In this document: positions 34,698 through 36,942 of the stretch, in pieces
Position numbering within the stretch: the first letter of the stretch is position 1
Layout of the letters: every line of letters begins with the position of its first letter
Source of the DNA: Trichosphaerium sp. ATCC 40318
Taxonomy: Eukaryota; Protista; Tubulinea
NCBI GenBank assembly: GCA_038496445.1
Contig: JALMLS010000577.1
Location: 558,001-622,000, forward strand
Direction: 5' to 3'
DNA length: 64,000 nucleotides
Notes under the pieces: generated by a model
What the model was told of the DNA's origin: nothing
The model's database searches: none
The model's input: only the letters and a program-made list of their open reading frames with translations
Translations under genes and position numbers: made by a program

Positions 34698-36942
34698 TTA
34701 CAATCTAGCGCTCATAGATCGCCTAAAAAAAACATACGTAAGTACTGTGTGGCATACATAGTTAAAAAGACGCAGTAGCTAAGCGAGTAGACACGTACTT
34801 ACAAAGATTTCATCTTTTTGCCCAAGTTCTCTGCTAGTTTGTCCAGGAACTCGAAAGTGTTCAAGTAATCAGAGCGTTTGACCCTAAGATGTATTTATGT
34901 AAGCATGGAAAAAGATAATTCTGATTTTTTGATTGGCATTGAAAAACACTGTTTAACGCACAAGTCGATGCTTCCTTTGATGCAAAGAGCAAGATCCTTG
35001 GTCATAAAACCAGATTCAACAGTTTCGACACAAACGTCTTCAAGAGCCTAAGAAAACCTCATTAGACACCGAGTACCGTACGAGTAAGGAGATAGACCAA
35101 AATCAAGAGCAAGTACGTACTTGACAAAATTGGGTGAGTTTGGTGTTGTTATCGAGCTTTGCTCTGTGAGCCAAACCACGAGTCCAGGCGAAAATAGACG
35201 CAATTGGGTTTGTAGATGTCTCTCCTCCTTTTTGGTGTCTACGGTAGTGACGAGTGACAGTACCATGAGCAGCCTCAGCTTCAAGGGTTTTGCCATCAGG
35301 GCAAACGAGGACAGAGGTCATCAAACCCAAAGAACCGAAACCCTAGATATAAAATTTAGGCGTAAGGTTTTCCCAAATATGGTTCGTACTTGTGCCAATG
35401 TATCAGATTGAACATCTCCGTCGTAGTTCTTGCAAGCCCATACGAAACCACCCTTAAAAAGTTGTTAATTTTGGAAAAAAAAGACCACCCTTGGCACGTA
35501 CTTCGTTCTTTAGAGCGAAAGCAACCATATCGTCGATGAGGCGATGTTCGTACCAGATGCCTTTGGCTTCAAAATCAGCCTACCCACCATGTTAGACGAG
35601 TTAAATACGCAAAAAAATGTTGAATGAACTAAGAATTTTTTGAAGAAACATACCTTGTACTCGGCCTCATAGACCTCTTGGAAGATGTCCTTGAAGCGAC
35701 CATCGTAAGCCTTTAGGATAGTGTTCTTTGTACTCAAGTACAATGGCCATCCACGGTTGAGGGCGAATACGAAAGAAGACTTGGCGAAATTGCGGATAGA
35801 TTCTTCAGTGTTGTACATTGCCATACCGACACCGCCATCACCCTTGAACTCAAAGACCTCAAAGTGTTGTGCTTCACCACCCTACAGAAATAATCAGCGA
35901 AAGAAAATTCAAACTCAGAACTTATAACGTCAAGCAACGTCGAAAAAAAAATAAAATTTGTAAAGTCAGAAAACCATCAAATCTGGTTCATGAACTGCTT
36001 TCACTAACCTCAGGTTGCCATGTAAGGGTCATTTTACCTTTACCCTTGACTACAATATCAGTTGCCTTGTATTGATCAGCGTGAGCGTGTCTTCCAATTA
36101 CAATAGATTTTTTCCATCCAGGAACAAGACGAGGGATGTTTCTAAGGGCACAATGGTTAATTATTACTTTTTTTAGTACTTTACGCTAGCACGCGATCGG
36201 AAACACTCGGAAAAACACTATGAAAAAAAATAAATTGTTTTAACATGCGTACTTGAGTAGAATAGGCTCACGGAATACGGTACCACCGAGAGTATTCCTG
36301 ATAGTACCATTTGGACTCTTCCACATCTTAGAGAGGTTGAATTCTAGCGTAAATAATCAGTAAACTACGCTTTATTTGGCAGTTAAGCGTAAAAGAGTTA
36401 AATAATACAAAAAAAGTTTTCCAACTGGGAATTTTTAACGTACCTTCTACTCTCTTCTCATCAGGAGTGATTGTGGCGCATTTGATACCGACGTTGTACT
36501 TTGCGATAGCCGCAGCGCAATCTACTAGATTAAGAAAACGCTTCAAAAGGCACGAGGAGTACCGTGGGTGATTTGATCTTTCGTCTCGTCACGCTTCTCC
36601 AAACCTAAGTCAAAGTATTTGATGTTCTTCTCCAAATCAACGTATGGGAAAATGAGCTATGTGTAAGTGAGTATGGGTGTATAAAGTAATGGACATGAGC
36701 TCAGAATTTTCAGAACCGCTTAGGGTAGCGTGTATGAACAATAGATAGTGTAAATGTGGCAGTTAACGTACTCTCTCCTTGATCAACTTCCAAATGATTC
36801 TAAGGCGCTATTAACAATCGTAATTACGTTACAAAACGACGGCATTGACGTCAACGAGGTATTTAACGTTTATCTTTTCGTACCTTGTCATTTCGTCACC
36901 ATCAATTTCTACGACATAGTTTTCGACTTGAATTTTAGACAT
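34698..36942 (-). CDS. IDH: NADP-dependent isocitrate dehydrogenase with two possible C-termini (stop at 34799, or PTS1 exon ending 34698)
   Basis: [75 protein letters not shown]. Confidence 0.97.

Follow-up and report, generated by a model that had tools for sequence, protein, structure and literature searches.

Overlapping splice donors around the stop codon of a Trichosphaerium isocitrate dehydrogenase gene and a possible peroxisomal isoform

Peroxisomes classically obtain their NADPH from NADP-dependent isocitrate dehydrogenase (NADP-IDH), and IDH1 of human and other mammals is located in both the cytosol and the peroxisome through a peroxisomal targeting signal of type 1 (PTS1). This report concerns an NADP-IDH gene on the minus strand of a 64,000-nucleotide stretch of Trichosphaerium sp. 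ATCC 40318 (contig JALMLS010000577.1, positions 558,001 to 622,000; the whole stretch is referred to as the window, and all coordinates are given in it), where the stop codon lies inside the first of two overlapping splice donors and the exon behind it reads as a PTS1-type tail. We believe, with somewhat better than even confidence, that the gene yields two isoforms, the major one cytosolic and the minor one peroxisomal, through competition between donors 4 nucleotides (nt) apart. The use of the upstream donor, the peroxisomal import and any regulation are what we infer, and the word “switch” is not earned for the twin donors.

The known routes to a peroxisomal NADP-IDH are a regular PTS1, gene duplication, alternative transcription starts, readthrough (predicted, in Drosophila) and frameshifting (in yeasts) (PMC3798809, PMC4526572, PMC4207609); alternative splicing is not among them in the literature reviewed. 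Mammalian and fungal orthologues have PTS1 at their regular C-terminus; in Drosophila it is located behind the stop codon, and a readthrough PTS1 was predicted for Idh (Stiebler et al. 2014, PMC4207609). The pre-duplication yeast IDP2 has a cryptic PTS1 in the +1 frame of the 3' untranslated region (UTR), and ribosomal frameshifting exposes this signal in a fraction of the molecules (Yanagida et al. 2015, PMC4526572). Our locus is similar to the latter two in the enzyme, in the cytosolic main product and in the position of PTS1 just behind the stop; however, its sequence offers a splicing route rather than a frameshift (IDP2) or readthrough (Idh).

Splicing that decides on PTS1 has been described for other genes. 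In MDH2 of Yarrowia lipolytica, two 3' splice sites 4 nt apart switch PTS1, and read counts and localisation are available for both forms (Kabran et al. 2012, PMC3372373); the cytosolic and peroxisomal forms coexist at ratios of 0.9 to 5 (PMC3372373). The likeness is considerable: one gene of a redox enzyme, a 4-nt splice shift at the last coding intron and PTS1 on one mRNA alone. However, MDH2 has alternative 3' sites and both of its forms were seen, whereas the IDH gene has overlapping 5' sites with the stop inside the 4 nt, and one form has been seen. In pumpkin HPR1/HPR2, alternative 5' sites near the 3' end decide the C-terminal PTS1 and give cytosolic and peroxisomal forms (Mano et al. 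1999, as summarised in PMC9266299 and PMC3798809). The IDH gene shares this use of 5' sites near the 3' end, but its donors overlap at a distance of 4 nt, whereas HPR is a plant photorespiratory enzyme with light-regulated splicing. A hidden PTS1 is exposed by alternative splicing or readthrough in fungal GAPDH and PGK (Freitag et al. 2012, as cited in PMC3798809), and Candida GND1 is a further case of the kind (PMC3798809); as proposed for IDH, GAPDH and PGK are abundant cytosolic enzymes with a minor hidden-PTS1 isoform, although they are other enzymes in another group of organisms (fungi). Dual targeting by splicing is already known, and what would be peculiar to the IDH gene is the geometry, i.e., overlapping donors with the stop inside one of them.

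The minus strand at 34810..34793 reads AAA TCT TTG TAA GTA CGT. Exon 12 up to donor 1 occupies 34803-34883, and its last two bases, TT, start the final Leu codon. Donor 1 (GTAAGT, 34797-34802) includes the stop codon TAA (34799-34801); donor 2 (GTACGT, 34793-34798) begins right behind this codon, which makes up the last three bases of the exon under donor 2. The two GTs are thus 4 nt apart, each is part of a donor-like hexamer, and they share one acceptor at 34723 (confirmed in transcripts for donor 2). The last intron is 76 nt long with donor 2 (34723-34798) and would be 80 nt long with donor 1. The part common to both donors includes a T9 pyrimidine run with the acceptor AG (34723-34733) and a candidate branch site TACTTAC (34738-34744, 14-20 nt upstream of the acceptor AG), which we propose from the sequence only. 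The tail mini-exon (34698-34722) consists of G, the codons for RSMSARL and TAA; the phase-2 frame from 34722 is (TT)G CGA TCT ATG AGC GCT AGA TTG TAA, i.e., L-RSMSARL*. The 10-mer GTAAGTACGT (34802-34793) is present in the window once, both strands counted.

The use of donor 1 would delete the stop and open the PTS1 frame. The C-termini are ...KMKSL* with donor 2 and ...KMKSLRSMSARL* with donor 1, and they differ in the presence of PTS1 alone: the end -ARL fits the pattern [SAC][KRH][LM] and the end -KSL does not. The protein ending in ...KMKSL is two residues shorter than the human IDH1 end and has no PTS1. The first-pass annotation, which proposed dual targeting by this element, had placed both donors, the stop and the acceptor correctly, and both C-termini that it predicted are confirmed in the sequence. 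What is unusual in this arrangement is that the stop is the last triplet of its exon and that the next exon reads PTS1 in the frame shifted by 4 nt. No RNA structure hiding or exposing the donors was found (minimum free energy of -27 kcal/mol, z = +0.89).

The RNA-type runs were considered as assembled contigs aligned to 34300-35120; such contigs keep the dominant path and drop minor variants. In the contigs of runs X1, X2 and X15 (three runs under three organism labels), one joint 34722/34799 is found in each, with 76 nt skipped and CT..AC ends; the joint position has a +1 ambiguity (34721/22 to 34798/99), and the intron was placed at 34798-34723. Therefore, the main mRNA keeps TAA and its protein ends in ...KMKSL; in this isoform, the last intron acts as a 3'-UTR intron starting directly after the stop. 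The same contigs contain the joint of intron 11 (34961-34884). Transcript contigs end at 34586-34590, which is 29-33 nt past AATAAA at 34624-34619, and the 3' UTR occupies 34586-34697.

Run X3 (depth 4.1) gave a single contig that starts without overhang at exactly 34802. The G at this position is the last base common to the donor-1 sequence (...TCTTTG/CGATC) and the donor-2 or unspliced sequence (...TCTTTG/TAAG); unspliced RNA and the donor-2 product share four further bases, to 34798. Such a contig end is what an unresolved assembly branch between donors 1 and 2 would give, and it lends weak support to the use of donor 1. As a side observation, RNA-type runs filed under about ten organism labels, as well as a single marine metatranscriptome, contain near-identical IDH transcripts (34400-37000). 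The X2 sequence differs from the window at 34617, 34683 and 34844, and X3 has the same change at 34844, which suggests strains or sibling species.

The two donors were also compared with the donor habit of the window and of the gene itself. The observed to expected ratio in the window is 2.65-fold for GTACGT, 2.0-fold for GTACGC, 1.86-fold for GCACGT and 1.07-fold for GTAAGT. The donors of the upstream IDH introns start with GTAC in 8 out of 11 cases and are GTAAGT in 0 out of 11; the exon ends before them are AA, AG or GA in 9 out of 11 cases, with one CG and one TT. Because of these hexamer counts and exon ends, donor 2 (TAA/GTACGT) suits the local pattern better than donor 1 (TTT/GTAAGT). 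The idea that both donors match the genome consensus thus holds for GTACGT and fails for GTAAGT. Two further peculiarities of the IDH introns are that the acceptors (34723-36883) are TAG or AAG in 12 out of 12 cases and never CAG, and that intron 3 is only 38 nt long with the donor GTACTC.

The gene as a whole extends over 34586-36942 according to the spliced model, Pfam, homologues, PDB matches and contig ends. It includes 13 exons from ATG at 36942 to the tail stop at 34698; the joined exons have no frame errors and encode 422 amino acids with donor 1 and 414 with donor 2. The Pfam family Iso_dh (PF00180) matches exon 7 with 36.8 bits and exon 10 with 48.6 bits at the curated cut-off of 27, and exon 7 corresponds approximately to residues 161-236 of the NADP-IDHs with solved structures in PDB. 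The 422-residue model is colinear over residues 1-412 with more than 70 intronless metagenomic IDH genes at 63-72% identity. A metagenome scan with exon 10 returned matches that are all intronless, bacterial-type IDHs with 63-72% identity, and a search of cluster representatives with exon 7 returned mostly fragments and frameshifted representatives. Judged by its sequence, the gene product is a eukaryotic homodimeric-type NADP-IDH of the same subfamily as human IDH1 (-AKL), with a colinear C-terminal region.

The start of the open reading frame (ORF), MSKIQVEN..., aligns to residue 1 of the homologues; because of this position we assign the enzyme to the cytosolic IDH1/IDP2 type. The cytosolic subtype is defined by a missing N-terminal mitochondrial presequence, and none is seen here. 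The in-frame stretch upstream of MSKIQVEN, read by eye and with no search for an upstream alternative exon, contains no ATG.

Protein searches with exon-sized queries yielded the relatives, each of which was then assigned to its contig. Three fragment-sized protein searches revealed no identical sequence and recovered the relatives L082, L085 and L086; these three metagenomic sequences, all genomic, reach the 3' end of the gene and constitute the comparative sample, while L081, L083 and L084 end before it. The closest relative is L082 (a metagenome contig from ENA), which has identical intron positions, 77-97% identity per exon and the donor habit GTACG/GTGCG, as in the window gene. Its intron 5 has the donor GTGCGC, and its third IDH intron (760-800) is of the GC-AG type (G/GCAAGC...CTAG) in the place where the window gene has GTACTC.

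Exon 12 of L082 ends with ...AAA GCC TTG TAG GCGCGC. The GT overlapping the stop and the first downstream acceptor (an intron of 46 nt) give (L)GAIHPRL*, i.e., eight codons as in the window. When the 25-nt tail of the window was slid over 366 positions of the L082 3' region, the best ungapped match was 14/25 and the next one 12, and the best register is exactly that of the GAIHPRL reading. The intron and the UTR around the tail do not align between the two species. Within the tail, five upstream residues differ, position -3 is Ala in the window and Pro in L082, the Arg codons are synonymous (AGA and CGT, respectively), and neither the terminal Leu nor the stop position has changed; this is the pattern that would be expected for a PTS1 under selection. 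In plants, established peroxisomal enzymes end in ARL as well as in PRL, e.g., the glycolate oxidases GO2 and GO1 (PMC3355810). A second candidate for the tail homologue in L082, GCGATCC after TTTTAAG (reading -LRST*, with no PTS1), was rejected, since the register test favours the first acceptor.

L085 and L086 (from JGI metagenomes) have intron 11 and the donor habit in common with the window and contain fewer introns. The last exon continues uninterrupted to ...KSIFVRSNAKL* and ...KTLFVRSNAKL*, respectively. In these two, as in mammals, PTS1 is contiguous and constitutive, whereas the main mRNA of the window gene stops before it. Overall, a PTS1-type end is found in 3 out of 3 relatives reaching the 3' end, with the same Arg-Ser-x-x-Ala-(Lys/Arg)-Leu flavour as the window tail. 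The tail segment thus appears to be kept by selection in the relatives, in this small sample. The view of RSMSARL as a PTS1-type coding element, also taken from the first-pass annotation, is supported by this comparison, considering that one relative reads -PRL with the splice frame of the window gene and the other two have an uninterrupted -AKL end.

It is tempting to propose the following mechanism. Most pre-mRNA is spliced at the downstream GTACGT; the stop is then retained, and the IDH ending in ...KMKSL, devoid of a signal, would stay cytosolic. In a minority, the upstream GTAAGT would be paired with the same acceptor; this would remove GTAA together with the stop and append RSMSARL. We presume that this IDH-RSMSARL would be imported by the PTS1 receptor PEX5 and supply NADPH inside peroxisomes. 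The isoform ratio would be set by two mutually exclusive donors competing for U1/U6. Nonsense-mediated decay should spare both mRNAs, since their stops are located at or after the last exon junction.

Several observations weigh against this mechanism. Of the two joints expected by the first-pass annotation, that of donor 2 was recovered in three runs, while the 80-nt skip of donor 1 is present in no contig, although the contigs of X1, X2 and X15 span the junction. Donor 2 is the assembled, hence the major, form in all three of these runs; a minor isoform could go missing from contigs, which keep the dominant path. A coverage gap might also explain where the X3 contig ends. GTAAGT is not enriched in the window and is absent from the other 11 IDH introns, and the exon side TTT/ of donor 1 is atypical within the gene. 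On the comparative side, the sample includes only one close relative, and its PRL reading is based on an unverified GTAGGC donor and on one choice among several acceptors.

These observations bring forward a rather unlikely explanation that nevertheless deserves attention: GTACGT completely took over from an ancestral arrangement with either a coding last intron or a contiguous PTS1 tail, the protein is purely cytosolic, and RSMSARL is an undecayed remnant in the 3' UTR. It would agree with donor 2 alone being seen in three runs and with GTACGT, rather than GTAAGT, being the enriched donor type; the one-piece PTS1 in the distant L085 and L086 makes an ancestral coding tail plausible. Nevertheless, two species have an unbroken tail frame although their intron and UTR sequences around it are beyond alignment, and the stop position, the Leu and a synonymous Arg are kept in it. 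The X3 contig also breaks at the base expected if the donor-1 product is present, and a perfect GTAAGT 4 nt from a donor in use is unlikely to be wholly silent. Given the PTS1-type ends in the relatives, continued translation of the tail, for which donor 1 would be needed, is more likely than a pure relic.

We give much less probability to a coincidence, in which the exon behind an ordinary 3'-UTR intron has -ARL in one frame by chance and GTAAGT arises automatically from G-TAA-GT. Indeed, the tandem donor itself appears cheap: given TAA/GTACGT, the upstream donor arises whenever the last sense codon ends in G. At the window composition, 0.44% of stop-delimited frames end in [SAC][KRH][LM], and 0.52% do so after an AG; with about 0.5% of random frames ending in PTS1, a scan of many genes meets such cases. 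However, NADP-IDH orthologues are classically peroxisomal via a C-terminal PTS1, tails of the same type are found in all three relatives reaching the 3' end, and the similarity to L082 is register-specific. A chance frame is therefore unlikely in view of the PTS1-type ends in all three relatives.

A translational route is highly improbable. ARL can be read in two ways, in the donor-1 frame and, just as well, in the +1 frame of the donor-2 mRNA, and a +1 slip before the stop (UUG UAA G) would give ...KSL-K-RSMSARL. The geometry is that of the cryptic PTS1 of the pre-duplication yeast IDP2 (PMC4526572), and the donor-2 mRNA is the abundant form; but no slippery homopolymer beyond UUU precedes the stop, the tandem donor is a simpler route, and the tail exon of L082 has another acceptor spacing, so that the +1 relation would need checking there. 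Plain readthrough of the stop on the donor-2 mRNA was discarded, since it yields AIYER* with no PTS1. Finally, there is hardly any probability that donor 1 is constitutive and that the enzyme regularly carries PTS1, as human IDH1 does: GTAAGT is a textbook donor and the 422-residue model is clean, but the skip in the contigs of three runs is 76 rather than 80 nt.

A further arrangement of competing donors may exist in L085 and L086. In L085 (1446-1650) and L086 (1256-1460), the 30 nt TTT GTA AGG ... CTC TAA are identical, while the upstream codons differ synonymously. The identical block TTCTC/GTGCGCGCTTTC is located 17-23 nt past the -AKL stop; the intron after it has diverged, with a CTGAC branch-like site and CAG/GCCTAA kept. 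The conserved donor 17-23 nt past the stop is GTGCGC, and the conserved acceptor is immediately followed by GCC TAA. The GTAAGG within the tail codons, if spliced to this acceptor, may give ...IFA*, i.e., PTS1 would be lost. One could imagine an old conserved PTS1 splice switch whose geometry changed within the clade, the upstream donor turning PTS1 on in the window and L082 and off in L085 and L086; we consider this unlikely and mention it tentatively. If true, it would mean that all four species make both IDH forms from one gene, with two competing donors used in mirror image.

If donor 1 of the window gene is indeed used, the locus would be a further independent solution for peroxisomal NADP-IDH, in a lineage beyond fungi and plants. 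It would also be a natural test bed for a GTACGT-preferring spliceosome choosing between mutually exclusive sites 4 nt apart. As for annotation, a peroxisomal isoform can be overlooked when gene models are terminated at the first stop, and models that splice at the textbook GTAAGT would misreport the main product.

Other features of the window are outside the IDH gene. An intronless ORF of 399 amino acids (20877-22076, minus strand) encodes an F-box and LRR_6 repeats, and the ESM-Atlas clusters closest to it come almost exclusively from giant viruses (Nucleocytoviricota). Two long single-exon ORFs encode MORN-repeat domains (7382-8503, minus strand, 373 amino acids) and an HMG-box domain (26080-26796, plus strand, 238 amino acids). 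A transfer RNA gene at 12357-12428 (minus strand) is the sole Rfam match in the window at the gathering threshold.

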